Shown piece after piece: positions 1 through 56,945 of a stretch of DNA of 64,000 nt (position 1 is the first letter of the stretch; each line of letters starts with the position of its first letter). Source of the stretch: Anthoceros angustus (lineage: Eukaryota; Plantae; Anthocerotophyta). The stretch is taken from positions 1-64,000 of the forward strand of contig VJWM01000325.1 of the NCBI GenBank assembly GCA_010909165.1, in the 5' to 3' direction. Both the position numbers and the translations under genes were made by a program. The notes beneath the pieces are model-generated. The model did not search any database. It was not told the DNA's origin and saw only the letters and a program-made list of their open reading frames with translations.

Positions 1-15
1 CGATGTACCGGGTGC

Positions 16-20853: not shown

Positions 20854-20878
20854 ATGGCTTCCATGGATGAGAGAAAGA

Positions 20879-22431: not shown

Positions 22432-22771
22432 GGTTTGCAAGCGCGGCTCCGATGTTGATGAATCTGCCCTCTGAGCGAGGCTCGTTACTTGATTCTCCAG
22501 GGCCTTTGCTTGGGGACTACGCGTCGTGGTCGCTACTCTGACGAGTTCCCACAGAACGCCAGTCCCAAGGCCGTGAAGTAAATGTCGATGCTCCAACCGC
22601 AGATATGGCCACGAACTGGAGACCAGCACCGGCTTTACAAGAGTACAGGATATTGACCTTCGTCCGAAATCTTAAGACGTGCTTTATTGTCCTTTCCGGT
22701 GGTGGACCGAAGTCACACAGATTTGCAGGGGTCGATACAGCATCGTCCAACAAAGGACTGTGGGAAGCAAA

Positions 22772-26200: not shown

Positions 26201-26439
26201 CTCTTGCTATTCATTCGATCGTAAAGGGTATATGATTTTGGAAAAACCGTTTTAATGAGGGAGTAATAACTATTGGAGATGACAATGAAAATTCAACATG
26301 CAGTGCAAGTCCTGTTTCCATCTTCCAATCAAGACATGCAATTGCGTTTCCATGCCTTTGGTGTGTGTTTTGTACTGTCGAGTCTCACACTTCATGGATG
26401 GGTGCTATCAAAGAAAAACAATCGGCAAGGGAACAAAAG

Positions 26440-27240
26440 TCTCCAAGAGTGAGGAGATTGACTTACCTTAGAGAGAACTTTTGGACGCATGGACTCGAGA
26501 AATTCCGCCTTGACAAACATCGAAACATATGGATATTGAATGCGGGAGGTATTGTCAATGGGCGCGGCATGCAGCGCCTCCATATATATCTTCTGACGGT
26601 AGAAACAAGTGACTTACCTTGGGAGAACTCGTGGGCGCATGGTCCCGCGAAATGCCGTCCCTTCTGACAAACGTTGTAACATATGCGGAGTGAGCGTGTG
26701 GGCGGTGTAAGCATGCAGCGCCTCCACTATCTATATTTTCTACAACGGTACAAACAAGTGACTTACCTTGGAAAGAACCAAGGGACACATGGACCCGCGA
26801 AATTACGTCCCATCTGACAAACGTTGAAACATATGAGGAGCGAACTGTGCGGGCTAGGGTATTGTCAGTGGAGGCCCCGGCATGCCGTGCCTCCACTATC
26901 TATATTTTCTACAACGGTAGAAACAAGTGACTTACCTTGCACAGAACTCGTGGGCATGGCCCCGAAATGCCATCCCTTCCGTTTTAAACACATGAGGAGT
27001 GAATGCAAGCTAGGGTATTGTCGGTGGGCGCCGGCATGCCGGCGCCTCCACTATCTATATTTTCTACAACGGTAGAAACAAGTGACTAACCTTGGGCGAA
27101 CTAGGGAACACATGGACCCATGCCATCCCATGTGACAAATGTTCAAACATATTAGGAGTGAATGCAAGCTAGGTATTGTCAATGATGGCGCCAGATGCCT
27201 CCACGGTATTTTGGAAGACAAGCGGTAGACCACGTAAAAG
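26440..27240. repeat. Five ~150-170-bp tandem repeats downstream of transposase 1 (putative subterminal array)
   Basis: The anchor (aaacaa)gtgacttaccttg recurs at ~26460, 26605, 26755, 26925 and 27077. Units include gcgcctccactatctatattttctacaacggt. Confidence 0.85.
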
Positions 27241-27387
27241 CATGGACCCGGTAAACGCCTTCATTACATAGCGACGTAAAAACGTGCGACCAGTGTTCAG
27301 CCAACCTATCTAGTAACTGTCGGCCGAGTATGAAACTCGGAAGCCAACATACGCTCACTCTATCGTGAAAACAAAACCCTAAAATCT

Positions 27388-30300
27388 CTAGTCTTCGGGA
27401 CACTGAATTCCTTCGTCAACCAAAGGACATCCATCATCCACTTCATGGTCACTGTCCTCCTCTCCAGGCTGCAGATAAGGTCGCAGCTGATTCATTCTAT
27501 CTCGAATAGCCTTCTTGTCGGAAGCGTAAAGGTGCTTTCTTGCATTGAGGTTGAACCCATAATAGAGAATAATAGTCTTATTCACAAATAGTTTCTGAAT
27601 TTTTTTGGGTAAATTTCTCGTTCCCACTCTCTTCCCATTTCGCGATCGTCGATTATCTGGTCCTCTAACAAAGAACTCCTTAACGTATTTCCCTTCAAAA
27701 GCATCAGTGTGCTCAGTCCTATACCAGTGGACCATAAGAAATGGGTTCGCGCAATCGAAGTCTACGCTTTCCACCTTCCCAATCCAGAAAGCCCTGTTAT
27801 GTGTATCTCCTGAGCATGGAGTTGCAATGAACATGCCCTTCCTTATCTCTTTCACATCTCCATTCATCCTTTCTATTTCTTGTTGTTGTCGACTTGCATT
27901 CTGGTGAGCTCCCAAATACATATCCCTTTGAGGAACTTCTCTTAGTAATGCTTCATCAAGCACAACCTCCTCCGGCACTTGAAGTGGCGGCATGTGCCTC
28001 CACCTCTTCTGTTGTACCACCTCCACGGTTGTTTAAGCACTAGAGCAATATTGTTCTCCACAATAGTGGCAATTCCTTCCTGGTCGACCCAAAACAACCT
28101 CCACCACACCCTCTCCGATGGCGTGATATACGCCAAGTTCAAGAAGCCATGCTTCAAGTGCGCCACACACGTTGGTGAAAGACCTCCATCTTGACCCTTT
28201 TTGTCTCTCGCCGGCATGAGGGGAGTGGGGCGACGGTGGTTGATGGAACAAATTTCAAAATTCCAACCCATCTTGATTCCCATTGAGGGATGTTGAGTCG
28301 CTTACTTGAATGGCCGTAACTTGACCTCGGTCCCGCCTCCTCTCTCGTGATTTTAAATTGATGTTGGAAGGAAAGATTATTCAACCGGTTCATCGCCGCC
28401 TTGTATGCATATCCTCTCGTCCCTTCTTAATGGGCCATACATAAGACCGAAAATCGCCACCTCTGTATTACTTTAACTTTGCGTTGGGGTGAAAGCTCAA
28501 AATCTCCAAAGTGTATCAATAGTAAACGCTTCTTTGTGCCTAAGAAGCTTGAAACAAGAAAACATTTGATCAACGATCATGGGTATGACCAACCAATAGG
28601 AACCCAACCTTTATTTTAACGAACACAAGGTCGATGAGCATATTTAGGTACGCGAATAGTAGCTGGTTCTTGTTCTCGGCAAGTATTATCAAGTCGAGGT
28701 AAAGAACTTTAGGAAGCACCCTTCGTAAGAAAATATGACATCCTGAATTATATGGATAGTGAGATTGGCGTCGTGATTAGCGTAGTGTAAATATGCCCGC
28801 CTTGAAAGTGTAATTATGTATCATACATCCCACCACATGAACATTAATAAGTGATGCCTCGCCAACTCTTTGGGATAACGGAGGAAATGAGGGAGCTCTG
28901 TCTTCTTCGTCCATGCCATCGATAGCAATGCATATACTTGTGGGGCTGACTATAACTTTTGGACCGATGTTTTCTTTGCTTTGTCTCTCTCATTGCTTAG
29001 TCGCACCACTGTGATGCCAAAGCTCCTTCGTAAACCTCTGCAAAAATGGAGACACAGTATTATATCGAGATGATTGTTGCACAACCTGTAACATGAACAT
29101 GGGTGCGTTAATCTCGCTGAGGCGCGGCATGCTTGCCCCCCGGACCGACATGCGGAAAAGCTTTGGGGGCACCCCTCCGGCGCCCTGAGGCGCTGAGGGG
29201 GCCGCGCCTGCGTGCATGTCTTGAAGGGTCTGGGCCCCGACAATGGAAGCACTCTTCCGCCTAGTGCAACCTATGTGAGTCTTGCACATTGGTATCTACA
29301 TTGCCACACCTCTGCGACAAGCGAGGCGCAAACGCGGTGGCCCACCTTTTAAGAAGCCACATATGCATATACACTCCGCAGACATGTAAGCAGGCGATCA
29401 TGCATCCTTCCGCAAAAATGGTTCTTAGAAACTATGCACATCCCAGCAGGATATGAAGAACAAACCTTGGTCTGCTCTGCCGGAAGTGTTCCGGATGGTG
29501 CGCTTCAGTCCTTCACATAAAGAGCAAGTGGAAAACCTATTAGACTTTGGAATCCTAACCTTCGGGAAGTTGGTCCTCCAGAGGGTCAGAAAATAGGGAT
29601 ACGACACGAACTGCATACTAGACCGTGTCATATCCCGGCGATACTGGGCCCAGATCTCCAACTTTGAGAACGTGTCCGGCAGGTGGAACACATCAACGTT
29701 TGGCAGCCTTTCCGCCATCACTTGAAAACTGTTATCCATCCAGGCAACGGCTCCCAGACTGTGTGTAGATGGTTGTCGCGGATTCACTCTTGACCCATCC
29801 CACGGTGCATTGCATAACACCCTGCTCTTCAACTCCTCGTACCTCTCTGAGCCGATGCAGTATACTCTTCGAAAAGCTTGCAAACAACACCGAATGCGCG
29901 TCGCCCCCATTATATGCGTGATGACCTTGTCCTTTCTGGTGGCCTGTAAGTCCACGACCAGGAGGGACTGAAGAAATGTCTCTTGCTCTGCCCTCCCCAT
30001 TCGCAGAAAACGATAACGTTGCTCATGGAAATTGGCCTTAGACATTGACTGGACGCATTGCTTGTTGCAGCATGGCTTCCGGAAGTCCGCTGTGACGATG
30101 TCGGAGTCGCTCTTCGACAAAGGAACTCCACTTGCCCGCCTTCTCTGAACCACGGATTGCATGTCCCGTGGCGCCACAAATGTTTCGCTCAGTGGTTTGG
30201 GGTGGAATGACCGTGCGTCAGGGCGGTCGCCTTCCTCTGTCTCACTAAAAGGTGCATCAGCACGAGGGATTTCCGAGAACACCCTCCTTTCCTCAATTGG

Positions 30301-30722
30301 AAACAAACCCCGGCGACGCACTGGTGCGTGGGAACTATTCGCTTCTTCATGGCGCCGGTGGCCACTAGGACTCCGCTCCACAGCTGAATACAAATTGATG
30401 TTCCTTGGTGTACGAGGAACACCCCGAGGAATCCTTGGTGAGGTCTGGACCCGCCCCCTCCAACCTTCACCTGCAAACGCGCCAGCATTTGGTGACACAG
30501 TCAGGGGGAACCTAGCCTCTTCTGGTCAGCTGTTGGCATGCACGTGAGGACAGAACTACACGCAGAATTAACACACTGACCATCTACTACCCACAAGCCA
30601 TTTGGAGACTGCGGTGTGTTGTGCGGCATCATCGGGACAGGAGGATCGGACGCATTCAATCTTGCATTGCGTTTCCTTTTTCTTGCAGCGTCCAGCTCTC
30701 GGTTGAACTGCGATGACAGCAA
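27388..30722 (-). mobile_element. Transposase 1: Sola-like / DUF7869-type DDD transposase gene with introns, frameshifted in this assembly
   Basis: KPCCNKQC...RYRFLRM; WMDNSFQVMAERLP...FHLPD; FPKVRIPKSNRFSTCSLC. Catalytic motifs: AIDGMD (~28908-28925), LPKVLYL.LDN..ENKN (~28660-28720), GFLLVGHTHD.VDQMF (~28561-28610). C-terminal ORF at 27388-28026. Confidence 0.85.
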
Positions 30723-30929
30723 GTCCTCCCTTCCTGCAACATGAAAACGCGAAGTTTAGCTGGGAGAAGAACATCAAGGGAACATTATTGCATGGAGTGC
30801 ATTGGATACAACAAAGATCGCTCACTTCACTGTCCATGCGGTGAGTCTCTGTAACATTTCAGGGCGATGCCACTTCACCCACGACACAAACGAAAGTGTG
30901 TTCTCCTGCAGGAAAAGGGAAATATAACG

Positions 30930-33190
30930 TCCAAGCCACCAACTTCAACGTCACCCAACGCACCTGAGAAAGGCGCTGGCTGCGCCGCTCAATGCACAAG
31001 TTCTAGACCTATAACGGCAAACAATCATTGCACGCCATCGTAATGGCGCCGCCTCCAGCCGCCAAAACGACACCACCATTAAGAGGTGTAGTTAGGACAT
31101 TATCCTAAAATGGAATTTATGTATTATGTACGTTCGCGAATCCATGGAGGTTACGGCTGAGAATCGGGCAAATGAAGGGGAACCCTAACTTCTTGTCCGG
31201 GCGTATAAGGTCTTTTCCCCACTGTCACGACGAAGCGGGCTTTACGTCCCCTTCAACTTTGTATGCGTGCGGACTCCTGCGGCGGGAGAAGAGGGAGTGA
31301 TTCAACGCTTGCGGTGGATGCGCGTAGGGCCTTTGAGGATCATCCCCACGCAAGGAAGGAGGTGTTCTTCTCCCCAATTCGTTGCTTTCCTCCTCGCAAA
31401 GTGAGAACTCTAATACGTATGCTTTCAGCTGGTTGATGCGCATCCGCGTTCCTTGTGGCAGGAAATCATGGCATCGGGGAGGGCTCTCCGAAGCAAGAAG
31501 AACCTAGCGGCGCCTACGCTTGAACCACCTTCTGAGATTGTGCGGAAGAAGAAGGCGACTCGAGGCGGACGGAGGAAGTCGCGGATGGCGCGTGCCGCCC
31601 ACAAGGACCGGTGGCCCAGGCCGCAGCATCGCTAGGCGATAAGGATGTGGGTGGGGCGGCGAAGAAATCGAGCTCGGAATTCAGCAAAAGCCGGCAACAC
31701 GGGGAGGCGGGCCACGAAAGACAAGGAGGCTTGAAGGGGAAGAAAGCAACCCGATCCTGTGCCTTCGCCATACAACTTGGAAGAAACTATGCTCATCGGG
31801 CGCGACTAACTCAATCGATGCGATTAATTGTCTAGGGAAGGAGTGGTTTTGCAGGCGGGCGGATGATGACCATATGGACAACAGGCATGGGTTCTGAGGT
31901 TTGGACCAGCTAAGCCAAATCAGCGAGCAAGAGTTGGCTGGGTTGTATGGGCAAGTCTGGATTTGTCATAGCGGAACCGAATTCGAGATCCTCCTTACAA
32001 CAAAGCCACCAACTTCAACGTCGCACGAGAAAGGCGCCCTCAATGCACAAGTTCTAGACCTATAACGGCAAACAATCATTGCACGCCATCGTAATGGCGC
32101 CGCCTCCGCCAAAAGCGACACCACCATTAAGAGGTGTAGTTAGGACATTGTCCTAAAATGGAATTTATGCATTATGTACGTTCGCGAATCCATGGAGGTT
32201 ACGGTGAGAATCGGGCAAATGAAGGGAACCCTAACTTTTGTCCGGGCGTATAAGGTCTTTTCCCCACACTCCACGAGCCGGCTTCGTCCCCTTCAACTTT
32301 TGTATGCGGCGGACTCCTGCGGGCGAGAAGAGGGAGTGATTCAACGCTTGCGGTGGATGCGCGTAGGGCCTTTGAGGATCATCCCCACGCAAGGAGGTGT
32401 TCTTCTCCCCAATCGTTGCTTTCCACCTCAAAGTGAGAACTCTAATCGTATGCTTTCGGTGGTTGATGCGTCCGCGTTCCTTGTGGCGAAATCATGGCAT
32501 CGGGAGGGCTCTCGAGCAAGAAGGACCTAGCGGCGCCTGCTTGAACCACCTTGATTGTGCGGAAGAAAGCAGAAGAAGGCGACTCGAGGCAGGCGACGGA
32601 GGAAGTCGCGGATATGGCGGCTGTCGCGACAAGGACGGTGGCGGCCAGGCGCTGCGGCAACCAGCATCGCTGGAGGCGTGCGGATGTGGGTGGGCGGCGA
32701 AGAAATCGAGCTCGGAATTCAGCAAAAGCCGGCAACACGGGGAGGCGGGCGGGCCACGAAAGACAAGGAGGCTTGAAGGGGAAGAAGAAAGCAACCCGAT
32801 CCTGTGCCTTCGCCATACAACTTGGAAGAAACTATGCTCATCGGGCGCGACTAACTCAATCGATGCGATTAATTGTCTAGGGAAGGAGTGGTTTTGCAGC
32901 GGAGGGTGGATGATCTTGACCATATGGACACATCAATGTGGGTTCTGAGGTTTGGACCAGCTAAGCCAAATCAGCGAGCAAGAGTTGGCTGGGTTGTATG
33001 GGCAAGTCTGGATTTGTCATAGCGGAACCGAATTCGAGATCCTGCTTACAAAAAAGCCACACCAACTGGATGAAATTCGCCCGGTGCGGAGGAGTTCAAG
33101 GTTATCACCGTGGGCCTTGGGATGTTCAAGCTTAAGAAGTGTTCCCGGATGTCGACAAGCGCCTTGAGAGGCTAAGCAGAATCAACACGT
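30930..33190 (+). CDS. Unknown ORF3-A (TKKPH-motif protein) within a 2x ~1.07-kb tandem duplication
   Basis: Units start at ~30932 and ~32003. Frameshifted translation ...GWMILTIW...GLDQLSQISEQELAGLYGQVWICHSGTEFEILLTKKPHQLDE, then a gtatgg donor at ~33190. Confidence 0.45.
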
Positions 33191-33351
33191 ATGGACGGGT
33201 TGGCTAACATTGTGTTGTGCTTTAACTGCTTTTCATTTCGCTTGTAGATGTAGCGTGAGTTGGCTTATGGGTTTTGTGTGTCAGCAGTGGGAGGGCTTTC
33301 TATAAGCAAGCTGTGCTTTTGTCACGATCTATCGTGGACCACCGGAGAGAA

Positions 33352-36300
33352 ATGAGCATGCGGCGAACAGGCAGCCCTCCCAAAATCACGAGAGGACCTC
33401 TCAGGCAGCTCAGAGGAAGAGGAGCTGGGCCCCGAAGATGAGCATGATGGACCATTGCCCGACATCCTTGGACAATCCGACGAAGATGATGGAAGAAGCG
33501 GGGATGACTTGGAAACCGAGGTTAGAGATGCAGATTAATAATGGATTATGACATGCCTCCTGACTCTATGCTTGTGCCCACAGTCCCTTATAACCCGCCA
33601 GCCACAGGCGGGCGCCGGCATGCCGGCGCCCCGACTCCATTCCAGGGTGTGGAGTCCCTGCCAACCCCTCAGCCAGGCATGTGTATGGATGTGGCAGGAG
33701 CAAGGGAAGAGGAGGGGCGCCGGCATGCCGGCGCCCCTACTACGTTGCAGGGTGTGGAGTCCCTCCCAACCCCCCATGCAGGCATGTTTATGGATGTGGC
33801 AGGAGCAAGGAAGGGGCGCGGCATGCGCGCCCTCCTCCTCCTCCAGCGCCACCCTTCTACTATACCGGTGCTATGAGCTATCGACCCGGCCGTTGGATTG
33901 TCGGGAGGGCTGGAGGAAAGGCAAGCAGCGCACCGAGGCAGCCCAACACGACACCCAAGTCCGGATCTGGTAATTTGTTGGCGAACGAGCTAGTCATTTC
34001 CGATACAAGGCGGGATGCGGAAAGAGGAAGCAGTCTTGATGCAAGAGGATCGGCGAGCGAGAGTTTGGAGCCGAACATGGTAAAATACGGAAGAAAGCAA
34101 AGACTACAGAACTATGTCACAGAGGAGACATTCCAGTGCACCTTTCAGCGGATGAAGAGAGGTTGGAATCTTCCTTCCACGAGGAGGACTACCTCACCCG
34201 AATTCGAGATGCAGCATGCGAAGAAGGTGGTCCGAGGTGTCTTTGGTAAGAGAATCTGGCTGCCTCTTATCTAACCCCGGATCGCAGATTCGGCGTGTGG
34301 ATGAAGCGTGGACTAATTATCTGGCTCGCGTGATTGGAAAGGGCCGAGTTGAGGAGGGCGTATTGCCCCTTTTGTGCATGATTGATCCCAAGGAGTGTGA
34401 TGATCTAGAGGACTGGACTGGAAAAAATTCAGGGCAAAGAAATACATCATGGGTGTGTTAGGCGGGAACCACACATTTGCGGCAATGCAACATTTGGCGG
34501 ACATATCACCAGTGAAAGAGCGTTTCAAATGGATAGAGGCACATGTGTATTGTGGGTGACCACGAAATGAGGGTTTTGGCGGATCACAATACAATGTCGA
34601 CAAGCGGCGGAAGATGTCGTTCATAGAGCAAGTAAGATATCTCGAGATGAAGCTTATAGCCAAGCGGGATGGCGTGCATATGTCCATGAATTGGAAGTTC
34701 AACTGTATAAGGTATTGGGTCTTATCGAAGATGATGAAGGACGGGAAGATGATGCCTACAAAGCAGAACAAGGTTGACAGGGGCACATCTTGTGCATAGC
34801 GAAGTTGGAAGGAAGGGTATGGGAGAATGTGGACAAAATTTTTGCAAAGTGGGAGGCTTGTGACTTGCGGAAATAAGAAACATGTGGCGATTGAGCAAAA
34901 GAGCAAAGGCAAGCGGAAAGCGGCGGAAGAAACGAAACAAGTTGAGGTATATTGGTGAAGCCCAAGGAGATGCAGACAAAGCCATGGCGTTGCTTTCAAG
35001 GTATTCTGCGGGGAGGCGCGGCAAATGCTTATTAGTGCCAGAAAGTTCTCACCGGCCTTATGGATTTGAAGGAATGTCGGATGAAATTATATTGCGCAAG
35101 AAATTGCATATCATCCAAGTGGCCATGGCGAAGCACTTAGGATGTTCATCTTTTGAGATGGTGAGGCAAGAGTACCCACAACATTCCACCGAAGTAGTCG
35201 CGAGTTCAGGCTTTCGAGGAAAGGTATGTTATCATACTCTCTGTTTCTTAGAACTTTATAGTGCAGGCGGGAGGAGGAGGGAGGCGCGGCATGCGCCCTC
35301 CTCCTCCTCCTCCTGTGCAGGCGCCCGGCATGCGCCCGGCATGCGCCCGGCATGCGGCGCTGAGGGGTGGCGCGGCATGCGCCCTCCTCCTCCTGTGCAG
35401 GCGGGAGGAGGAGGGCGCATCTGCGGCTGCCTCTTATCTAACCCCGGATCGCGATTCGGCGTGTGGATGAAGCGTGGACTAATTATCGCGTGATTGGAAA
35501 GGGCCGAGTTGAGGAGGCGTATTGCCCCTTTGTGCATGATTGATCCCAAGGAGTGTGATGATCTAGAGGACTGGTGGAAAAATTCAGGCAAAGAAATACA
35601 TCATGGGTGTGTTAGGCGGGAACCACACATTTGCGGCAATGCAACATTTGGCGGACATATCACCATGAAAGAGCGTTTCAAATGGATAGAGGCACATGTG
35701 TATTGTGGTGACCACGAAATGAGGGTTTTGGCGGATCACAATACAATGTCGACAAGCGGCGGAAGATGTCGTTCATAGAGCAAGTAAGATATCTCGAGAT
35801 GAAGCTTATAGCCAAGCGGGATGGCGTGCATATGTCCATGAATTGGAAGTTCAACTGTATAAGGTATTGGGTCTTATCGAAGATGATGAAGGACGGGAAG
35901 ATGATGCCTACAAAGCAGAACAAGGTTGACAACAGACATCTTGTGCATAGCGAAGTTGGAAGGAAGGGTATGGGAGAATGTGGACAAAATTTTTGCAAAG
36001 TGGGAGGCTTGTGACTTGCGGAAGAAACATGTGGCGGGGAGCAAAAGAGCAAAGGCAAGCGGAAAGCGTGGAAGAAACGAAACAAGTTGAGGTATATTGG
36101 TGAAGCCCAAGGAGATGCAGACAAAGCCATGGCGTTGCTTTCAAGGTATTCTGCGGGGAGGCGGGCAGCAAATGCTTATTAGTGCCAGAAAGTTCTCACC
36201 GGCCTTATGGATTTGAAGGAATGTCGGATGAAATTATATTGCGCAAGAAATTGCATATCATCCAAGTGGCCATGGCGAAGCACTTAGGATGTTCATCTTT

Positions 36301-40690: not shown

Positions 40691-41331
40691 GGTTTGTGTG
40701 CGGTTGAATCTTCGGACCTGAACTTCCTTAGGTGGCTAGAACGTTTTCCTGTTCGTACCTTTGTATCGTATGGGCGTTGTCTTTGGAGTGGATGACACGC
40801 GGATCTTCTAGTAACAAGTTGTTACGTATGCGGCCATGAGGCGTTTTGAATACATCGGCGGACGCACTCTACTTATAAGCGAGCATTGCCGCTTGTCCAC
40901 AAGCATCCACGCACCTTGGCACCTTCATTGTGCACTTTGGACACGAATTCAAATCTCAAGCACAATGATTGCTGGCACGCATGTGCTCAAGAGACGTGTT
41001 TGGAGTGAATTAGTAATCGTATGAAAAGTACCTGTATAATTTTTCCATAACCGGCGTACATTATTCCGCCGGTATGAATATTATCGTGTTAAGAATATCT
41101 GCAGGGTTCTGGCTGGTGTGAACCTTGACAAGTTGGACCCTCAACAGAGTCCGCGCAATATCGGCGGATTCTTGAAAGCCTCTTTTGCGCTTTGGGCGGA
41201 GGTTGCCACCCCTTTCTCATATCATGCAAAACACGTGTTTTAAAGAGATGTGCTTAATGGCGAGTTCCACTTAGAACAATGTAAGTAAAATCGAGGTTTT
41301 TCCATGTATGCACACTTTTGTTTGATGCGTC

Positions 41332-44300
41332 GTGCACCCTTCCGAGACTTACTGGGAAAGGCGAGTGCGGCACTATGGGTCCAAAACACGTAATATGCAT
41401 TCAAATCAAAGTCGGGCATTTTCCACGAAGGGTCAAAACGGAATTATACGGTCAGCGGACGAGCCCCTCATCTACAAGTCCACAGCTACCCAAAGGGTCA
41501 TCTACTTCAACCAAATTGAGCTCCGAATCGCACCGTTTCTACATTTTCCAAATCCACCTTTCCGTGTCACCAAAGTCATCACGCCTTCAACGAAAGCAGA
41601 GCCTCTGTTATGCCTGGTAGTGTGCCGTTTTCATCCCATATTGTCAATGCCGGTTGGTCTTCAACCGGCCGGTCGTCACAGTGCGGAGTCCTTCATTCGA
41701 CCCTTCTTTCCAAGCAAGCTATACACTTGCATTTTCACATCAATGCCTCCGTCGCATGCATCTCCTTTGCCCAAAACTTGCCAAGGCCCCGCGAAAACTT
41801 ATCTTTTGTTATTTCTTCGAACTCGTCCAGCAGCCGCTTCAACCCGTTCACTCTTTGCGACATATACATTGAGCATCGTGCGTCTTTGTCAATGGCCACA
41901 ACGTTCCTTTTCCGCTGAATACCTACCACCAAAAATGACCCTGATCCTGCACATGCGTCAACAATCCAGTCGTCTTCGTTGGAGAACATGTTCACCAACA
42001 TGCCTAATAAGCCCACGGGTTTACGATGTAGCGTCGACCATCTTATCACCGATGTGGTAAATCGACTTCTTCACCACGGTCCATGTCGGATAACTCTTGG
42101 CACTTTGATGTCTTTGCGGAAAAGAGGAGCTTTTCCGACATTGGACTCTGTCCTCACTGCGCTTCCCTCAAATATTCCACTTTTGTTTCCACGGCTGATT
42201 AGGTGGGATGTTGGTTTTCTCCCATACCGAGTTTGTATGACTCCTTTCACCGCACCAAGACCTCAAAGCCTCCACGGCTTGAATCACCCCATCCACCCCA
42301 TGCATAAGAATTATCCTAACACATCGTGGTCTTCTCGTTGAAAGAGCGATGATCTCTTTCAATTCTTCTTCAACGAAAGCCTTGTCATTCTCATGCCCGT
42401 AAACCTCGAGGAGGTCGCAGAAAAGAAGAGTATACCTCCTCGGCAAAAATCCTTTCATATCCAAAATGTCTCGATGCACCACCGATATGCCACTTTTGTC
42501 CAAGACCTGCACTCAAACCGCCACATCCATGTCCTTGTCGGCCATTTGTTTTCGCTCTTCTTCCATCCGTTTCGATTCGCGCTATAAACAAAATCTTGGA
42601 AAGGTTTTGGCGCTTTCCAAATCCACGCCTTTCCGTGTCACCAAAGTCATCACCTTCAACTGCAAAGCGAAGCGTGAGCCTCTGTTGCGGTGGTAGTGTG
42701 CCGTTTTCATCCCATATTGTCAATGCCGGTTGGTCTTCAACGGCGGTCGTCACAGGTCTGCGGAGTCCTTCATTCGACCCTTCTTTCCAAGCAAGCTATA
42801 CACTTGCATTTTCTGTCAATGCCTCCGTGCACACGGATCTCCTTTGCCCAAAACTTGCGGGCCCATGGCTTATCTGTTGTTATTTCTTGAACTCGTCCGG
42901 CCGCTCCAACCCGTTCACTCGTTGTGACATATACATTGAGCATCGTGCGTCTTTGTCAATGGCCACAACGTTCCTTTTCCGTTGAATCCGGCCACCAAAA
43001 TGATCCCGATCACGCGCGTCAACAATCCGATCGTCTTCGTTGGAGAACATGTTCACCAACATGCCTAATAAGCCCACGGGTTTACGATATGGCGTCGACC
43101 ATCTTATCACCGATGTGGTAAATCGCTTCTTCACCACGGTCCATGTCGGATAACTCTTGGCACTGTTTGATGTCTTTGCGGAAAAGAGGAGCTTTTCCGA
43201 CATTGGACTCTGTCCTCACTGCGCTTCCCTCAAATATTCCACTTTCACACCACTTGGGATGTTGGTTTTCTACCATGACTCCTTTTCCGCACCAAGACCT
43301 CAAAGCCTCCACGGCTTGAATCACCCCATCCACCCCATGCATAAGAATTATCACATCTCGTGGTCTTCTCGTTGAAAGAGCGATGATCTCTTTCAATTCT
43401 TCTTCAACGAAAGCCTTGTCATTCTCATGCATGTAAACCTCGAGGAGGTCGCAGAAAAGAAGAGTATACCTCCTCGGTGGCAAAAATCCTTTCATATCCA
43501 AAATGTCTCGATGCACCACGATATGCCACTTTGTCCAAGACCCACTCTGGCTGCCAGCATCCATGTCCTTGTCGGCCATTTGTTTTCGCTCTTCTTCCAT
43601 CCGTTTCGATTCGCGCGCTATAAACAAAATCTTGGAAAGGTTTTGGCGAGCTTTCAAATCCTCAATGTCTCCCGGTTTACGCAAGCAGCGGTGGTCGAAA
43701 CAACTCATTGACAGAGTGGAGGCGCGGTCACCGCGCACTGGTGCGCGCGCCCACGACCCGCTGGAGGTCGGCGCACTCCGCGCGCGCCGGCACCATGCCC
43801 CGAGGCGGCCGGGCCGCACGCTGAGCCGGCCGACCGGGCGACTTCGCCTACCACGGAAACAACAAGAGTGCGCGGCCACCGGCGATTGCAAGCGCCACCG
43901 ACCGCGACTCAACGAATACACTCACTTACCACTTTCGCAAAAGTCGTTGAAACTTCGCCAATTCCTTGGCCCTTGTGATGTTTAAACTGCTTACCAAGGT
44001 GGCACACTTCATAGCCTTCGAAGGCATGCTCGATAAGGTTAATCTTCTTCCTGCCAACATCGTATCCATATCTTTTAGCTGCGTTCCTTGGATGACCTTC
44101 GGTCACGCTATCAACATCTCTCACCTTCTCGTCCTTCGGGACTCCTTGGAATGCTCTCCATGCCCTTCCGAGCATTGGAGCCGGACGAGGGGGGGGGTCA
44201 GTTAAGGACTGGCTGCCTGTTGTAGTTGGGTCTTGTGGCTTCGCGCGCCGCCTGCTGCCCCGACAGGCTGCTCGCCCGCCTGAGTTCGTGCACTTCTCCC

Positions 44301-45487
44301 ACATTTGGAAAATCGTGTCCACGTTTTCCCATAATTTACCCCCTTGCACCTCGCAATCCTCAACGGCAGAGTCTTCCTCCACCATCTTCTCATACATAAT
44401 CGTGTCCTTGAGTTTCCAGCCTCCAAAGATCCCCAAAGAACTTGTACACATTGAACTTCCACCGCATGGTTTTCCATCGGTGTGTCCGGTGCCAAATCTC
44501 AAGCTCATCATGTATGTAGCGACTTGTTCAATAAAACCAAGCTTCTTCCTCTTGTCGCATACACATTGTGATCCACACCGCATTTCTTCCTCTCAAGCTC
44601 ATATACATGGCCTCGAGCCATTGAAATTTATCTTCCGCGGATACATTTCGCATGGTCTGCATGGCGGCATAGCAATGGTTCCCTCCCAGCACCCCTAGGG
44701 TGTAATGCTGGGCTCTGATCTCCTCCGGGTCTGCATCTTCCTTTTTCAAGCACTGTGCTGGATCAATCATGCACAAAAGTGGGAGCGTCCCTTCCTTCAC
44801 AGGACCTGTCTGCATCTGTCGAACAAGGCACTTCATCCATGCCTCATCCACCTTCCTTATCTGAGCATCTGCCGTTAGAAATGAAGCAGGACGTAGTACC
44901 GAAATGTGAATGTCGAATGTTGTGGTTTGCACCCGCTTCTTGTAGGCCCGACGAACCATCTCCGAGATAGTCATCCTCCTGCGAAGGAGCTCCATGCTCG
45001 CATCCGTGGTCGCCCGCAACGGCTTCCTCTGCATGCTTCCTCGACTTCCTTAATTTTTCCGCCTCGCCCACCTCTTCTCCATCACCACCGAGATCTTGCC
45101 TTCCTCTTCGCTTGATTGGTGTGCTCGCATGGAAATCAAAACAAGATGCTTCAATTCTTACATGCGTTCATGGAGGCGACGGGCGTTAGGAGCATTCTTA
45201 CCAGCCATTCGCCTTCTCATCTTCACCGGAGACTGACAGGATTCCCTTCTTCTTCTTTCTGCGGCCGCTGCCACGGGTCCTTCGGACGAGGAGGGTCACC
45301 TCCTCCTCAAAAGCCTCGATTCAAGACCCCGAGGCTGGACATGTTGCGAGCCATGGACAGCCTCGCCTGTGCTCGCCTCCGGATCGGACCGAGGCGAGGC
45401 GCTCCTCCTCTTCCGGAGAGCTCGGCTCGGCACCGGAACCTCGTCCTCCTCCATCTCCGGTTGCATAATCCGGGCATCGTTCGACAC
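41332..45487 (-). CDS. ParB/Srx-like + beta-class DNA methyltransferase fusion, paralog B; MTase part duplicated (~41560-42600, ~42620-43660)
   Basis: QIRKVDEAWMKCLVRQMQTGPVKEGTLPLLCMIDP; VLGGNHCYAA (44664-44693); LGFIEQVATY; RYTLLFCDL(PRG); RKPVGLLGMLVNMFSNEDDWIVDACAGSGSFLVVGIQRKRNVVAIDKD. Confidence 0.85.
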
Positions 45488-45689
45488 AACCCACGCCCGC
45501 CTGAGCGCGCGCGTGCGTCGACCGCCCGCCGCCGATCACCGCGTCGATCACTACACTGTTCTTGACCCTTCAACGTGAGGAGTAGAACGCAAAATTGTTC
45601 TCCCCTGCTCATTTTAAAGAGGAAAACAATGAGTATACCGATGCGAAACCCTAGCGAAAATGGGAAGTGATACATGACATATACAACCG

Positions 45690-46190
45690 ACTTACATCTT
45701 GAACACTTTTGGAATCACGCAAGGCCGATTTCAACTGGGCGCTCACAACGAGGCATTATCTTGGCAGCATCCATTATCAGCAGGAGATGTGTGTTGATGT
45801 CATCGTTTATGTGCAAATGAGGTTTCTTGGTGACCAAAAACTGTATGTGCATATCTTCGCCCATTCCGTCAACTGTTGCACATAGAATCCATCCAGCTCT
45901 TGCCTGGGAATCCCCCTCAATACCATTGTAACCGTTAATCCATAAGGCCAATAGTGGAATCCAAGGCAGCCCTGGATCTTCGGGTTCTTCTTCTGCAACA
46001 ACGCTCCACTCTTTGTTATGTTGTACCGCGGAAGAGAATCCGGAGCTTTTTCACGGCTGCTCCACAAAGTTAAAAGCATGAGGAATCGCGATGTGCATTT
46101 CCACCGAGGTTGGTGCTCCTCACCGGCCATCAATGTCTTCATATCCTCTCCGTTGAGTACCCTTTGAGGTGGACGTCCGGACACTACCAT
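45690..46190 (-). CDS. Unknown ORF3-B (TKKPH-motif protein), upstream of and co-oriented with paralog B
   Basis: Frameshifted translation ...PWIPLLALWINGYNGIEGDSQARAGWILCATVDGMGEDMHIQFLVTKKPHLHIND...KCSR followed by a gtaagt donor. Confidence 0.45.
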
Positions 46191-46199
46191 GAGAGGATT

Positions 46200-48100
46200 C
46201 TCTCAATTGCATAATAGCGGGTGGGGTTCTGTTACCACATTCGCGATCCGCATCCCCTCATCCGTGCGCCCTTGCGGCGATCCTCGCTCTGCACCGCCAT
46301 CGCATTTTTCCGCCGCTTCACGCGTGGCGCCCAACGCATCGATCTGCATGCTTATTGCTCCGTGGCGTCCTCGCGATCACCATCCCGCAATCTTCAAAAC
46401 CTGCGGGAAGTTGGCGGGAGGAAGTAAGAGAATTGATCCGGACTCTCGAACTCTTGATGAAAAGGAGAGGCTCGAGCTTACGTGGAAATGAAATATGGAT
46501 GTTGAAGCGCATCAAGCGGGATTACGATAAAGCCTTAACACTAGTTACGCTAAAGGCTCAAGTAGTAGCAACGTAGGTTCACGAACACGGTCATCATTCA
46601 TTTTAACCTCAAATGCCTAAAATAGGCCCATTACAAATTCGATGCATCCACCTCATCTTATGCCATCATTTTCTAAGGATGTGCACTCTCATTCAAGGTC
46701 CATCGAATACGCCATCACCCATCAGAACCGCAATTATAAATCATCCAACACCACGTACCACCTTATGTCACATGTCTATAATTGTGGGTGTGACTTTGAT
46801 CTTGATTCAAAGTGCGTTCTTCCTCGCATGCAGTAGCTCTTGAAAATTTGCCGATGTTGAAGCGGTGGAAGGAGTTCTTGAAGTCAAAGGACTTGGATGC
46901 TATCGGTAACGCGATTCCTCCCGATATGCAACACTGAGAGGCATGCGTGGCGGCGCCTCCAGCGGGGGTCGATCTGCATGCTTATTGCTCCGTGGCGTCC
47001 TCGCGATCACCATCCGCAATCTTCAAAACCTGCGGGAAGTTGGCGGGAGGAAGTAAGAGAATTGATCCGGACTCTCGAACTCTTGATGAAAAGGAGGCTC
47101 GAGCTTACGTGGAAATGAAATATGGATGTTGAAGCGCATCAACGGGATTACGATAAAGCCTTAACACACTAGTTACGCTACTCAAGTAGTAGCAGTAGGT
47201 TCACGAACACGGTCATCATTCATTTAACCTCAAATGCCTAAAATAGGCCCATTACAAATTCGATGCATCCACCTCATCTTATGCCATCATTTTCTAAGAA
47301 GTGCACTCTCATTCAAGGTCCATCGATTTAATGAATTCGCCCGTCCATCATCGACCGCTTATAAATCATCCAACACCACGGTACCACCTTATGTCACATG
47401 TCTATAATTGTGGGTGTGACTTTGATCTTGATTCAAAGTGCGTTCTTCCCTCGCATGCAGGTAGCTCTTGAAAATTTGCCGATGTTGAAGCGGTGGAAGG
47501 AGTTCTTGAAGTCAAAGGACTTGGATGCTATCGGTCGGCGAGCGAGATTCCTCGATATGCAACACTACTGCGCGTCGGTCGAGGCATCAAAGGAAGCGCA
47601 AGCACTATTTGCATATTGACATTCCATCCACCGAGATGTGTATCATTTGAACTACGGTCGAGGCATCAACGTTGAAATGCCTATCGGCTCAAGGTATTCA
47701 AGATGAAGAGGAGAACTAGATGAAGGTACGTGCAAACTCGCGGAAATCGATTGCATTCCAAAGGCTCTTGTGAACATGATTCCGGATGTGTTATCAGACT
47801 GCGGTGCACGGCCTCCACCACTTCGCACGCGATAAGCGCATCCATTCCAAAGACACCGCCTGTTCAAGATGAAGAGGAGAACTAGATGAAGGTCGTCGTG
47901 CAAACTCGTGCGAAATCGATTGCATTCAAAGGCTCTTGAACATGATTCCGGATGTGTGTTATTCGTCTGCGGTGCACGGCCTCCACCACTTCCACGCGAT
48001 AAGCGCATCCATTCCAAGACACCGCCCGTTTCGGTATGTTGGATTCCATTCACGGAAGTCCTTCTCCGCCAGAGCTCGCCGTACATCCCGACCATCCGCA
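46200..48100 (+). other. Unassigned spliced coding-like region upstream of transposase 2, partly duplicated (46340-46900 vs 46960-47520)
   Basis: Coding-like frames (SWREEVRELIRTLELLMKR; LENLPMLKRWKEFLKSKDLDAIG; EIDCIPKALVNMIPDV) with gtaggt donors and atgcag acceptors. No family recognised. Confidence 0.3.
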
Positions 48101-48163
48101 AGACTACTCCTCCGGAAGTGCTCCACGACGACACACCCGGATATGGCGCTTCCGTTGGGGTGA

Positions 48164-50960
48164 ATGCCAACTCGGTTTGCAGACCGGTTGTATCTAGAAG
48201 ATACTGTTTCCACTGCGTGGCCCACGTTCGGTGGAACTGTGGAGGAAGAGGACTCGGATGATGTGCATTTGAACATCCACCTCCAAAAGGCGTACATACA
48301 ATTTGAAGCCGGGTCCGAATCATTTATCGAGCATGGCGACCACCACGTAGACGCCGGCAATCTAAAGTGCCCGAGATGAAATGTGAAGAGGTTCAGATTA
48401 CCCGTGATTTTAAAACTTGTGGTAGACAATGCTTGAGGACAATAGGGAAGGCAACCTTTCGAGATTTGAGGTATCGGTTCCTTAGAATGTGCGGGGAGGG
48501 GAGATGCACCTACAATCCCTTTTGATGTCGATTATGAGAGCGATGGAAGGGTTAGGGTAGACTGCTTTCTTGTCGGACGAGGAAAAGTGTATTGTTGTAG
48601 AGGCCTTGACGCTTTATTGTATCGGGTCTAGCGTGAAGAAGCGAGCCGGAAACATGTGGTCCTTCTTCATGACGGCAATCTCAAGATGTCGTAGCCGTGG
48701 ATGAACCAACTGTTTATGCTTATTGCCGAGAGAATGCCAAACATTGAAGTGTATCACCTTCCTGACTCTTACTCAAAAGGCGAGGTGTTTCAAGAATACA
48801 AGCAACATATGCAGCGCGCTCAGCAGTACAGTGTTTCTCATTCCTACTTTTGTCAGCTTTGGGCTACGCACTTCCACAAGGTGAAAATTCCGAAGAGCAA
48901 TCGGTTTGCCTTGTGCACAACCTGCGATTACCTCAAACGAAATATAAAGAGCGAGAAAAACAGAGAAAAACAAGGTGAGGCTTGATGTGAAATTGTGTTT
49001 TGGCAATGCAGTGGGGGGATGGTGCGCCGGCCACCGGCCCGGCGCGCGCCACCGGCGCCGACGGTCGGCACCGGCATAACAGCACGGCCGACCGGAGGCG
49101 AGTTTGTGAAGCGCGCCGTCACCGGGCGACTCGGTATTTATGCTTATTGCTCCTTCCGGGCGCTTTATTCCTCAACGTTGTTTGGGTGATTATTTTGCGA
49201 AGCATTTGAAGTCGATCCGAGGCGCCCATCAAGTCCGAGAGAGAAAATGCATCAAGCACGTGAAATGTTATGGAGACCGGCAAAGTATATCGGGATATCC
49301 ATCGACGGATGGACCAACAAGACACGCTTCCACATTTCACGCGTTTACCCAAGGACCCGATGTAGGTTTGATCGACGTCCATGTTGTGGGGTGCATGATT
49401 TATAACTACACCATGTCGGCGAACTCTTCATGGCATACGGAACATCCGAACGATGCAAACTCGACTATAGCCAATATCCGATGTCATTTCAAATTACGAG
49501 GACTACTACCAAAGGTTCTTTATCTTCAACTCGACAATCGCACGGGAGAATAAGAATGCACCGCTATTCGCTTACCGAATATGTTGGTAGAGCTTAAGGT
49601 TTTGAGAAGGTAAAGTAGGATTCCTCGTTGGGCACACTCATGACCAGTTGATGTTTTCGAGGTTTTCAACGTGCACGGAAGGAAGCTTTACGTTGCCCAA
49701 ACCGACCGGTATTTTGGAGAATGCATATACGCCCAAACCAAAATTATGGAGGTGAAAGAAGTTCCGGACTTCAAAGTTTGTGTGGCCAATACCTTATGGT
49801 AAGGCTGGCTATAAACAGTTGTCTGATGAAAGCTTGCACAATATATCTTTTCAAAGATCGTTCAAAATAACCCGAGAAACGCGAGGTGAGCGGACTTATT
49901 CGTGATGAGGGGCAAACAATATTCCACGATGAATCTGGTCACCGGACGAGGGTTTGGAGTTTTGAATAATGTCCCATCTACTCCTATTCAAGCCGCTCGC
50001 TTTGGTTCATTTGGAGGTCCGGCAAAAAAAGCGAGGTGAGCGGACTTATTCGTGATGAGGGGCAAACAATATTCCAGTGAATCTGAATTGGTCACCGGAC
50101 GAGGGTTTGGAGTTTTGAATAATGTCCCATCTACTCCTATTCAAGCTCGTTTGGTTCATTTGGAGGTCCAAGTAAAAAGCGGTTGCGAGGAGAGATCCCG
50201 AAGAAGTCTTGCAAAGAATGCGTGGGAAACTAGAGGAAACTAGACCCATTTGGGCGGTGAGGATATTTGGTGGGAGGAATGCTGAGCAATCACCATCGTG
50301 GACAAGATAGCATGTGAGCATGAGGAATTGAAGACCCTTGGCAATGGTGATAGAACACATAATGAAGAGTTGCATCGCCTGGTTGTACCGAGGTGAGATT
50401 TTACAGCATCCAATCTCGGCAAGTGCCCGGGGACATGTATGTTGGAGCGCATCGATGATGATGCGCAAGGCGGAACAAGAAAGCTTGAACGGCGATGTGT
50501 TGGAGATACAAACAGTCACATGATTGCGGTGCCTTGTGAGATGACGACAATCGACCATTCGGCTCGCAAAAGTTCTGGTGGACTTCCAATGTGACGCCCA
50601 TTCATTAAAGTCCATTGGTGGGTGACTAAATGCACCGACGCATTTGAAGGCGGTACCTAGAGGAGATGATTTTACGATCGCCACCAACGCTGCGTGGGGT
50701 CGCTCTCAACGACGGAGCATGAGGTTGCAAAACACGACAAATTGCTTCTTCGACACATTCATCTTGGCATACGGGTTTTCTCTAACAAAATGTATAACTA
50801 AATGCAAGGACCAACCATAATACGGAAAAACATGTACGTTTTGCGCTGTGTGTGGAGGAAGCTCGGAACATATGGAAGGAAGGGACCTGATGATGGCGTA
50901 AGATGTTGCATCCGGCGAGGACATTGAAACACTTGATGAACATGGTTCATGGAGTTGATT
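48164..50960 (+). mobile_element. Transposase 2: diverged Sola-like / DUF7869-type DDD transposase, frameshifted in this assembly
   Basis: FKTCGRQC...LRYRFLRM; WMNQLFMLIAERMPNIEVYHLPD; VKIPKSNRFALCTTC; SIDG(MDQ) ~49301; LPKVLYLQLDN..ENKN ~49505-49557; GHTHD ~49630; C-terminal LNGDVLEI...LAKVLVDF...VHWWVTKCTDAFEG. Confidence 0.85.
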
Positions 50961-51479
50961 AGTTAGTTTTCGATTGACCATGGACTCCTACTAGTGCCGG
51001 ACTGGGGAAGGTGCCGTGACCGCGCACTTCCGTGAGTGGATAGGTTGTGTTCCCCATGGACATAAACGGCTTAACCAAGTAGTATGGGCACACAAAATGA
51101 CGTACAACATGTAATTTGCGATTATGTTCCAAATCGCCAAAACCGTGTCTCTATTCGATGGACCTTATTTTTTAGGACAACACATGATAAGACCGGCTAC
51201 GACAAATGTTCAAACGCATCCACCGGGTCCCCACACTTTTCTCAAGTTTTGGAGGAATGAATTCAAAGACAATAATTTTTGGCCACGTTCTTTTCGGTCT
51301 GTCGAAAAGTGGATGCCAAATTTCTTCAAAACCCGCAATAACGTATATGGTTTTCGGGACATGCTTTTTGGATATGATGATGGGAAAGCCATCGCTTTTG
51401 CCCAAAGAGCCCATTTCAACGGAATCCGATATTGCGCAGACTGCTCCTCTTGTCATCCAACACCTCTCGAATGAAGTGA

Positions 51480-52700: not shown

Positions 52701-52719
52701 CCAACCAACTCCCAAGTTT

Positions 52720-56800: not shown

Positions 56801-56945
56801 ATATAACCAGAACGAGATAAAACCTTCATTCCCTTCTGAGACATATGTCCTAACCGGCAATGCCACAAGGAAACATTTGGCTGCTCTGTTACACAGATCA
56901 CATGATCTTTGACAGTGTTTACCTGAAGTGAGTACAAAGTGCCAC
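53870..56945 (-). mobile_element. Scrambled Ty1/copia pieces: integrase, GAG-pre-integrase, a duplicate RT/RNase H, protease, zinc knuckle and gag
   Basis: DVCGPMPLASLGG..FVTFIDDF..KVWVY (~53990-54100); LWHLRLGHMS (~54250); STTEAEYVA; NWIIDS; CHYCHK...REC; LARSTIMLTLS...DLKMKEGTRMSDH. Confidence 0.85.

Follow-up and report, generated by a model that had tools for sequence, protein, structure and literature searches.

Two units in mirror image

The stretch of DNA analysed here, which we call the window, comprises 64,000 nucleotides of Anthoceros angustus contig VJWM01000325.1 (assembly GCA_010909165.1, positions 1 to 64,000 of the forward strand). Between 25.9 and 51.4 kb it contains two units in mirror image, each of which, as revealed by six-frame open reading frames (ORFs) and by comparison of the window with itself, combines a DUF7869 transposase gene with a gene that fuses a ParB-like domain to an N6_N4 methyltransferase (the fusion gene). 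In unit 1 the transposase is encoded on the minus strand and the fusion gene on the plus strand, and in unit 2 the strands are reversed (Table 1). Broken reading frames were left unjoined, and the searches reported below used either single uninterrupted pieces or intact homologues. The genes lie where an initial annotation had put them: it gave the transposases at 27.4-30.7 kb (minus) and 48.2-51.0 kb (plus), where we find pieces at 27.39-30.5 and 48.3-50.8 kb that both match Pfam DUF7869, and methyltransferases on the plus strand of unit 1 and the minus strand of unit 2, both of which match PF01555 above its cut-off.

The mirror image had been described as one of three genes, and it stands for two of them, the transposase and fusion genes, which are found in both units. 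The 'ORF3' of the two units can be matched only at E 0.002-0.005 over 25-27 residues, and it shows no similarity to the equivalent ORF (243 amino acids, aa) of L004, an intact metagenomic relative described below; ORF3 was therefore rejected as a conserved third gene, and the conserved layout is one of two genes, not three.

The two units are related only as proteins. Their homologous pieces are 44-48% identical, and up to 70% in the catalytic core of the transposase: the transposase pieces share 44-70% identity (E down to 1e-33), the methyltransferase pieces at 38733-39224 (+) and 41738-42070 (-) 45%, and the N-terminal pieces of the fusion genes at 34156-34556 (+) and 44531-45049 (-) 48%. 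The self-comparison of the window revealed no DNA-level similarity between the units, flanks included, and they are therefore not a recent inverted duplication, as had been concluded from paralogues that are homologous yet highly diverged. Across 478 aligned codons, identity between the units is 0.58, 0.70 and 0.36 at positions 1, 2 and 3, the first two values being somewhat inflated because the codon blocks were picked by protein similarity. Third positions are thus near saturation with second positions 70% identical, a pattern that points to long divergence under selection on the protein and not to two decaying duplicate copies.

Table 1. Features of the window by position, with the flanking genes and the stutter regions (tandem repetitions of the written sequence) at the end; TIR, terminal inverted repeat
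Feature	Position	Strand	Remarks
Element 1	25938-41090		17-bp TIR + AAGA; ~15.2 kb as written, ~10 kb with stutter collapsed
Left subterminal tandem repeats, element 1	26459-27199		~150-bp period; GGCGCCGGCATGCCGGCGCC at ~26870 and 27027
Transposase 1 (DUF7869), in pieces	27388-30525	-	Pfam PF25273; tblastn with L004; matches transposase 2
Transposase 1, C-terminal part	27391-28032	-	
Transposase 1, further piece	28157-28426	-	
Transposase 1, core	28573-28989	-	IDGMDE, ENKN, GHTH
Transposase 1, N-terminal Cys-rich part	29428-30525	-	
'ORF3' region, element 1	30933-33067	+	low-complexity; written twice, copies 88.5% identical
Array of three palindromes	33607-33840		GGGCGCCGGCATGCCGGCGCCC type; 105-bp period; directly 5' of fusion gene 1 coding region
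Fusion gene 1, ParB-like domain	34156-34556	+	LPLLCMIDP ... VLGGNHTFAAMQHL; 48% to element 2; tblastn to Chara/L004 fusion genes
Fusion gene 1, noisy further copies of ParB-like domain	35494-35775, 37120-37329	+	
Fusion gene 1, methyltransferase domain	36762-39224	+	PF01555
Fusion gene 1, motif IV region	36762-37220, again 38317-38802	+	LLVMDVPRGF
Fusion gene 1, motif I	38733-39224	+	ILDACAGSGSS
Fusion gene 1, further stutter copy of methyltransferase	39575-40908		
Element 2 (tentative ends)	41148-51442		AGTC[C/T]GCGCAATATCGG, inverted, 41148-41164 / 51426-51442; 16/17 nt, E 0.02
Fusion gene 2	41738-45049	-	PF01555; Chara fusion protein matches
Fusion gene 2, motif I	41738-42070	-	IVDACAGSGSF
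Fusion gene 2, motif IV region	43085-43600	-	LLFCDLLEVY
Fusion gene 2, middle region	43912-44592	-	
Fusion gene 2, ParB domain	44531-45049	-	
Fusion gene 2, stutter pair	41545-42624 / 42614-43661		
Transposase 2 (DUF7869), in pieces	48307-50820	+	Pfam PF25273; tblastn with L004; matches transposase 1
Transposase 2, pieces	48307-48522, 48695-48982, 49110-49550, 49606-49752, 49756-49902	+	LQLDN in 49110-49550; GHTHDQ in 49606-49752
Transposase 2, C-terminal remnants	~50.3-50.8 kb	+	
Third element, element-1 family	57480-64000 (start only)		terminus AACACGATAATATT at 57480 (+); shared palindromes
Third element, palindromes	57684, 57887, 58686, 58811, 61790		same as element 1
NFU4-like	11338-12117	-	
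Hydrolase_4 / monoacylglycerol-lipase-like	12695-13858	-	
NUP50/RanBP1	16894-18261	+	
ADP-ribosylglycohydrolase fragment	20879-21433	-	
Stutter regions	14-3710, 30933-33067, 34258-40908, 41545-43661, 46339-47566, 50150-55211, 56945-64000		

The transposases

Both transposases belong to the Pfam family DUF7869 (PF25273), with matches at 28573-28776 (-) in transposase 1 (41.5 bits, E 1.4e-10) and at 49110-49550 (+) in transposase 2 (27.7 bits against a cut-off of 26, E 2.5e-6; a second piece gives E 0.009), and the L004 transposase recovers pieces of transposase 1 by tblastn at E 2.6e-16 and 5e-16. The motifs IDGMDQ, LDN..ENKN and GHTHxDxDQ are conserved across the window, L004, a locus of the charophyte Chara braunii (L005) and four metagenomic DUF7869 loci (L008-L011). 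The pattern first proposed for the window itself, DGMDQ / LQLDN..ENKN / GHTHxDxDQ, holds for LQLDN, ENKN and GHTH, but the literal string DGMDQ is absent from the window: element 1 reads IDGMDEE, the frame of element 2 is broken at this place, and it is the intact L004 protein that carries the full set (DGMDQ / LDN..ENKN / GHTHEDIDQ). Transposase 1 has an apparent intron after '...ADQG'.

A PDB sequence search with the transposase gave no match, and we found no papers on 'DUF7869' in the literature. A word-indexed search with the 366-aa N-terminal piece returned no homologues, a result explained by the length window of that search and by weak conservation in this part of the protein. A conserved C-terminal module was also observed, at residues ~400-480 of a 580-aa L004 ORF and at 27391-28032 (-) in the window (...FHIAKVVRLLPGKRFEVHWY... 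/ ...FWIGKVESVDF...LMVHWYRTE...); it has no Pfam match and, to judge from its sequence, looks like a small beta-barrel reader-type domain.

A ParB-like domain fused to a methyltransferase

The C-terminal domains of the fusion proteins match PF01555 (cut-off 26.7) at 38733-39224 (46.5 bits, E 5.6e-12) and at 41738-42070 (33.3 bits, E 6e-8). In both window copies motif I, which binds S-adenosylmethionine (SAM), is intact and lies downstream of the motif IV region, an order that marks the domain as a predicted beta-class enzyme, with motif IV before motif I. A profile of the methyltransferase family finds DpnA-type adenine methyltransferases as its closest PDB relatives (5hek/5hfj, E 3e-7), and motif IV has the form D[FL]PYGF in the seven sequences from Chara and L004, none of which varies at P, Y, G or F.

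The assignment of the N-terminal domain to ParB holds at the level of fold, through the L004 homologue, but is not seen by the Pfam profile: the ParB pieces of the window and of L004 gave no Pfam match even at E 10, and a PDB sequence search with the ParB-domain profile found nothing meaningful. The AlphaFold model of residues 81-272 of the L004 protein (22-row alignment) has a predicted local distance difference test score (pLDDT) of 87, and the top 30 PDB matches retrieved with it by Foldseek are all ParB, Noc, KorB, PadC or sulfiredoxin, the matches having probabilities of 0.98-1.0, E values of 4e-4 to 3e-2 and modest TM scores of 0.3-0.45. The ParB pieces of the window align to the modelled domain, and a ParB/sulfiredoxin fold is thus supported by a model of the homologue. 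The whole protein would consist of this domain, a helical middle region and the C-terminal beta-class N6/N4 methyltransferase.

Between the middle region and the methyltransferase domain both elements have, in the same place, a GC-rich low-complexity stretch (35270-35420, 36420-36620 and 37990-38180 in element 1, where it holds GCGCCCGGCATGCGCC-type repeats; 43620-43921 in element 2), and this stretch may represent either an intron with binding sites in it or a linker without ordered structure.

Termini and target sites

Unit 1 is bounded by terminal inverted repeats (TIRs), which had been missed initially together with any target-site duplication (TSD). A perfect 17/17-nt inverted repeat, AACACGATAATATTCAT, at 25938-25954 (+) and 41074-41090 (-) (E 2e-4 to 7e-4) encloses both the transposase and the fusion gene, and the 4-bp direct repeat AAGA lies immediately outside it (25934-25937 and 41091-41094); AAGA is in all appearance the TSD of element 1, the one clear case of a TSD that we have. 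The first 14 bases of AACACGATAATATTCAT occur exactly at only three independent sites in the 64 kb (25938, 41090 and 57480), with a stutter copy of the last at 60253. The terminus of element 1 thus recurs at 57480. About 400 bp outside the left end, at 25009-25551, there are 58-bp and 35-bp tandem repeats with units AATGGGCGTGGTATCGTGGGAGG... and TGGTCACGTATTGGGTGAAGGG....

The candidate ends of element 2 lie ~0.6 kb past each gene end and are positionally plausible; a search of the window for further AACAC-type termini belonging to this element gave no convincing site. Only 57 bp separate elements 1 and 2, which stand tail to tail. With distinct ends and with genes as different as those described above, they appear to be separate insertions from different families that separated anciently. 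The third element, which starts at 57480, has nothing similar to a transposase or methyltransferase in its 6.5 kb within the window and may be a non-autonomous relative of element 1. At 57579-57592 the terminus is repeated imperfectly and in inverted orientation, possibly as the end of a miniature element.

All five termini (left and right of L004, left and right of element 1, and that of element 3) begin with AACAC and continue into a short subterminal hairpin, which suggests an end structure conserved across distant members of the family. The TIR, of ~14-28 nt, is followed directly by the short perfect hairpin (25938-26000, 41030-41090 and 57480-57540 in the window; 20-80 and 8800-8871 in L004), for example ACCGGCGG...CGCCGGT, AAGCGGC...GCCGCTT and AAACCGGATAAA...TTTATCCGGTTT.

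Relatives in Chara braunii and in metagenomes

An exhaustive HMMER search with a 173-aa N-terminal piece of the unit 2 fusion protein retrieved only three proteins, a pair from Chara braunii and a third encoded on a short Logan contig. At one Chara locus (L001, 35701-38487) there is an intact, intronless ORF of 929 codons with the same three-part architecture, and a search with it revealed at least 17 Chara paralogues on different scaffolds and a 789-aa protein on a JGI metagenome contig. L001 and a further locus, L006, each have two copies of the fusion gene, 10-25 kb apart.

L004, a metagenome contig of 8915 bp, carries a DUF7869 gene on the minus strand and, on the plus strand, the unrelated 243-aa ORF and the fusion gene, all intact and in the order and orientation of the window's units, and its proteins match both units by tblastn. 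Its transposase matches Pfam DUF7869 with 170.9 bits (E 3e-50). TIRs of 28 nt (96% identical, 20-47 and 8844-8871) enclose all of its genes, making it a complete element of 8.85 kb; the contig ends 19-44 nt from these TIRs, as expected when a multicopy element is assembled. Two transposase ORFs are joined by a canonical GT-AG intron of 397 nt (GTAAAT...TGCAG) into a protein of 919 aa. Both window transposases are interrupted at this same point (after ...QG/RG), and since the intron is spliceosomal the element is eukaryotic.

In Chara, L013 (BFEA01000096.1) has a DUF7869 gene that runs in the other direction from the fusion gene and starts 9.7 kb upstream of it, and in L005 (BFEA01001146.1) a transposase lies 9 kb downstream of the fusion gene. 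Around the fusion gene L013 and L005 can be aligned colinearly for more than 17 kb at 80-91% identity, which indicates that the Chara elements are giant repeated elements of >18 kb; inside them, both loci have extensive tandem-repeat arrays, CA-rich ones among them. The divergent linkage of the two genes, whose recurrence in other genomes had been proposed as a check, is thus found again in L004 and in Chara L013, but at six of the eight Chara loci no transposase lies within 10 kb. The metagenome scan with a fusion-protein profile yielded no confirmed locus, and pattern scans of viral and prokaryotic contig collections with the family profile yielded no relatives.

Palindrome and inverted-repeat arrays

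Perfect palindromes of 20-26 bp of the type GGCGCCGGCATGCCGGCGCC, GG(G)CGCCGGCATGCCGGCG(C)CC, occur 10 times in the window against 0.04 expected, namely in the left subterminal repeats of element 1, directly upstream of fusion gene 1, in the GC-rich stretch between its ParB and methyltransferase parts, and in element 3. L004 has a 17-nt motif of its own, ACCGATAGCGATATACG, distinct from that of the window and present in 7 copies against 0.03 expected: four form inverted pairs 100-320 bp upstream of the fusion gene (array 5693-5915), two lie in the transposase intron and one upstream of the transposase. In Chara L013 a 35-bp tandem array with the palindrome GTTATAGGCCTATAAC (9200-9517) is found 400-700 bp upstream of the fusion gene. 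Three lineages (window, L004 and Chara L013) thus have palindrome or inverted-repeat arrays directly upstream of the fusion gene, and their placement suggests that these arrays are parS-like binding sites for the ParB-like domain.

Sequence quality

In most of 25-64 kb, as well as in 14-3710, the sequence runs through segments of 0.6-2.9 kb more than once, in staggered head-to-tail copies with 85-96% identity in the self-comparison, a repetition that we refer to as stutter; in 34258-40908, for example, ~2.6 kb of unique sequence is written two to three times. Gap openings between the copies equal or exceed mismatches, the differences being mostly indels of 1-4 bp with a transition/transversion ratio of ~1, and the frame breaks differ among copies of one segment, whereas the gene-bearing 9.6-22 kb is free of stutter and has long intact ORFs. 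An indel-rich pattern of this kind is typical of unpolished long-read sequence and is not usual in natural tandem duplicates. The stutter is most likely an artefact of assembly or gap filling, in which untrimmed overlaps of noisy long reads were concatenated. Two consequences follow: the 7.3-kb 'methyltransferase' of unit 1, whose reported span of 33.4-40.7 kb is inflated by tandem stutter copies, is really ~3.3 kb, and every frameshift in these regions is suspect and no proof of a pseudogene.

Flanking genes and other features

From 9600 to 22700 the window contains a GC-rich (58-65%) island of apparently intronless host genes (Table 1); for a streptophyte, three neighbours without introns are out of the ordinary. 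At 9663-11153 both strands carry long overlapping ORFs that Pfam does not recognise, and Rfam and tRNA scans of the window gave no matches. The NFU4-like ORF is 75-80% identical to land-plant NFU4, and ~64% over its full length to Selaginella and angiosperms alike. A red-algal source for the window, considered because its host genes lack introns and are GC-rich, was rejected because the NFU4-like protein is closest to land-plant NFU4; the gene points to a streptophyte, plausibly a non-seed land plant or a close alga. The proposal of a 'land-plant' family of elements is approximately supported by the neighbouring gene, while the relatives of the elements themselves are in a charophyte alga.

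Interpretation and alternative explanations

Taken together, these results make it likely, in our judgement, that the region consists of at least two, and probably three, TIR-bounded cut-and-paste transposons of one superfamily, whose transposase is of the DUF7869 type and whose autonomous members carry, in divergent orientation, a ParB-methyltransferase fusion gene. That such a family encodes its own bacterial-type amino-methyltransferase had been proposed from the gene content of the window, and the TIRs and TSD of element 1, the TIRs of L004, the multiple copies in Chara together with L013, and the selection seen in the codon positions all support it.

Several points nevertheless weigh against this interpretation: (i) the ends of element 2 are tentative, with no TSD resolved at them, and L004 has an ambiguous TSD, read as CTAC/CTAG when its TIR is extended. 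(ii) The lack of a transposase within 10 kb at six of the eight Chara loci counts against linkage, weakly so given the many runs of N, a flank limit that falls short of the spacing in L013, and elements of more than 18 kb. (iii) Four short metagenomic DUF7869 loci found with the L004 transposase (L008-L011) are without the methyltransferase, and the cargo therefore defines a subgroup and not the superfamily. (iv) The AlphaFold model of the catalytic region of the transposase, through which its putative RNase H fold might have been recognised, was built from a shallow 14-row alignment and has a pLDDT of 47, too low for a fold search. (v) Element 2 has no palindrome array, only a 166-bp tandem repeat, and that the ParB-like domain binds such arrays is something that we infer. 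(vi) The window proteins depart from their relatives in motif IV and in the ParB box, as detailed below. (vii) The sequence of 25-64 kb is of poor quality, which limits any judgement on the intactness of the copies.

Could the two units be an old inverted segmental duplication of an immobile host two-gene cluster, made of a transposase-derived gene and a methyltransferase? The units are indeed adjacent, mirror-symmetric and both broken as written, but each has distinct termini of its own, with TIR and TSD in the case of element 1, no DNA homology flanks them, the same package is TIR-bounded in the unrelated L004 and multicopy in Chara, and the contrast of nearly saturated third positions with 70% identical second positions means that the copies diverged as functional genes; we regard this as the least probable of the explanations considered here. 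The stutter makes it natural to ask instead whether the mirror arrangement, or the repeat-rich block as a whole, is an artefact produced by a mis-join or by concatenated noisy long reads, and the extent of the staggered copies, their many gap openings, their similar numbers of transitions and transversions and their differing frame breaks all speak for errors of this kind. Stutter, however, yields direct, near-identical copies and not inverted, 45%-identical units with termini of their own, and the gene content is corroborated by independent data sets (Chara and L004), so that we consider this explanation unlikely. A simple mis-join within the 57 bp at 41090-41148 is conceivable, and it would leave the conclusion on the elements unaffected.

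That the fusion gene stems from a virus or a phage-like fragment integrated here, or from an unrelated neighbour that came to lie near DUF7869 by chance, would fit with the occurrence of ParB-methyltransferase fusions in phage and prophage loci, of which they are typical (PMC4738411), with the intronless genes of Chara, and with the scarcity of transposases within 10 kb at most Chara loci. It is, however, very improbable: elements 1 and 2, L004 and Chara L013 are four independent cases with the same gene order and orientation, the TIRs of element 1 and of L004 enclose the fusion gene, the pattern scans of viral and prokaryotic contig collections gave no relatives, and the 17-nt repeat upstream of the L004 fusion gene recurs both in the transposase intron and ahead of the transposase, so that the two genes are linked as parts of one element. 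A better case can be made that the methyltransferase is true cargo but that in the lineage of the window its module is catalytically dead and acts as a DNA-binding regulator or a partition-like factor. Motif IV departs from the canonical (D/N/S)PP(Y/F/W), reading DVPRGF in element 1 and DLLEVY in element 2, each in two stutter copies, against the invariant PYGF of the seven relatives; the ParB box, GGGH[STC]REARE and invariant in these seven, is GGNH[TC][FY]AAMQ in the window, with the arginines lost in both copies; and selection has kept motif I and the ParB core conserved. From these motifs, the window subfamily may have lost catalysis while keeping DNA and SAM binding, and its proteins may act mainly as sequence-specific DNA binders and not as enzymes. 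On the other side, motif I is intact, active methyltransferases with a non-canonical motif IV exist, and the noise in the sequence limits the trust to be placed in single residues; we therefore take the loss of activity to be a serious possibility, albeit one that we do not favour.

If the interpretation as transposons with a methyltransferase cargo is correct, the elements might work as follows. The transposase would move them by cut-and-paste transposition with a 4-bp duplication, and the ParB-like domain would recognise the arrays of palindromes or inverted repeats that precede its own gene and recur at other places in the element, tethering the methyltransferase to the DNA of the element and marking it in cis. 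The mark would most likely be N6-adenine, because of the D-type motif IV of the relatives and the similarity to DpnA, and it could benefit the element by promoting transcription, by blocking host silencing or by coupling transposition to replication, as Dam does for IS10/Tn5. More broadly, and only as a tentative and rather doubtful proposal, this could be a self-targeting module used across Archaeplastida, in which a ParB-like domain reads co-evolving eukaryotic 'parS'-like palindromes and directs the fused adenine methyltransferase to its own element, labelling it as 'self/active' so that silencing is evaded or transposition gated, and which would have been exchanged between transposase superfamilies (DUF7869/Sola-like in streptophytes; Plavaka, Zisupton and Mutator in red algae).

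Comparison with known systems

The nearest published parallel is offered by red-algal Plavaka elements (and Zisupton/Mutator elements) with a PAG1-3 cassette, described in a preprint on Bostrychia moritziana: PAG2 combines PF01555 with SET and PAG3 combines ParB with a 2-oxoglutarate (2OG) oxygenase, the transposases are of the CMC/KDZ or Mutator type, and in Plavaka inverted-repeat arrays adjoin the ParB-encoding gene (10.1101/2025.02.11.637652). The family described here resembles them in that both are TIR transposons of Archaeplastida with a PF01555 gene, a ParB-like protein and adjoining palindrome arrays. Compared by domains, however, the two are different: the red-algal proteins are separate, whereas here ParB and methyltransferase form one polypeptide and the transposase is DUF7869. 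No Pfam matches to SET, 2OG or KDZ/CMC were found in any window or L004 protein, and the homologue search with the ParB piece found no red-algal protein.

Sola transposons, as summarised from Bao et al. 2009 in PMC10741241, have a DDD transposase, a 4-bp TSD, TIRs of 11-1124 bp and a length of 2-9 kb, up to more than 15 kb; the moss Physcomitrella has them, whereas few are known in flowering plants. Element 1, with its 4-bp TSD and 17-bp TIR, and the D / D / HxxDxD acidic pattern of the family recall Sola, and membership of that superfamily would fit these features. The literature on Sola that we examined describes no methyltransferase cargo.

ParB-methyltransferase loci are also known from phages and prophages, and a 'chlorophyte-type Dam' is fused to a ParB helix-turn-helix (Iyer, Zhang, Aravind 2016, PMC4738411). 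The chlorophyte and chytrid proteins are Dam, group-2, M.EcoKI/TaqI-like (PMC4738411), whereas the enzyme predicted here is of the PF01555 beta class and lies inside a TIR transposon. These proteins and ours alike pair a domain of the ParB family with an adenine methyltransferase, and both go back to prokaryotes or phages, from which they were transferred to eukaryotic algae.

Other classes of mobile elements encode DNA-modification enzymes of their own: fungal KDZ transposons carry TET/JBP. Adenine methyltransferases are carried by retrotransposons such as DIRS-Dam and DAM-LTRs (bioRxiv 10.64898/2026.05.21.726589). With both of these our elements share only the principle, a mobile element with its own DNA-modification enzyme, since they differ in element class, their enzymes are Dam/MethyltransfD12 or TET/JBP, and they are without a ParB domain. 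Finally, N4CMT of bdelloid rotifers is a PF01555 amino-methyltransferase of bacterial origin, encoded by a single-copy domesticated host gene with introns, fused to a chromodomain and used against transposons (PMC8885841). As in our family, a bacterial-origin PF01555 enzyme has been fused in a eukaryote to a chromatin- or DNA-targeting domain, but N4CMT is a host gene, whereas here the gene is carried by the transposon itself.

The type of cargo is thus already known from red-algal Plavaka, and what is new is the fusion of ParB with the methyltransferase and its association with a DUF7869 transposase in streptophytes, a setting that suggests an old, portable module. Transposons with DNA-modifying enzymes of their own are rare and are informative on how host epigenetic control is manipulated or escaped. 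The fused ParB-type domain and the palindromes that look like its match make it possible to frame a concrete hypothesis, in which elements of the plant lineage direct methylation to their own DNA by sequence, and the intact copies in L004 and in Chara L001 (35701-38487) are candidates for assays of expression and specificity.

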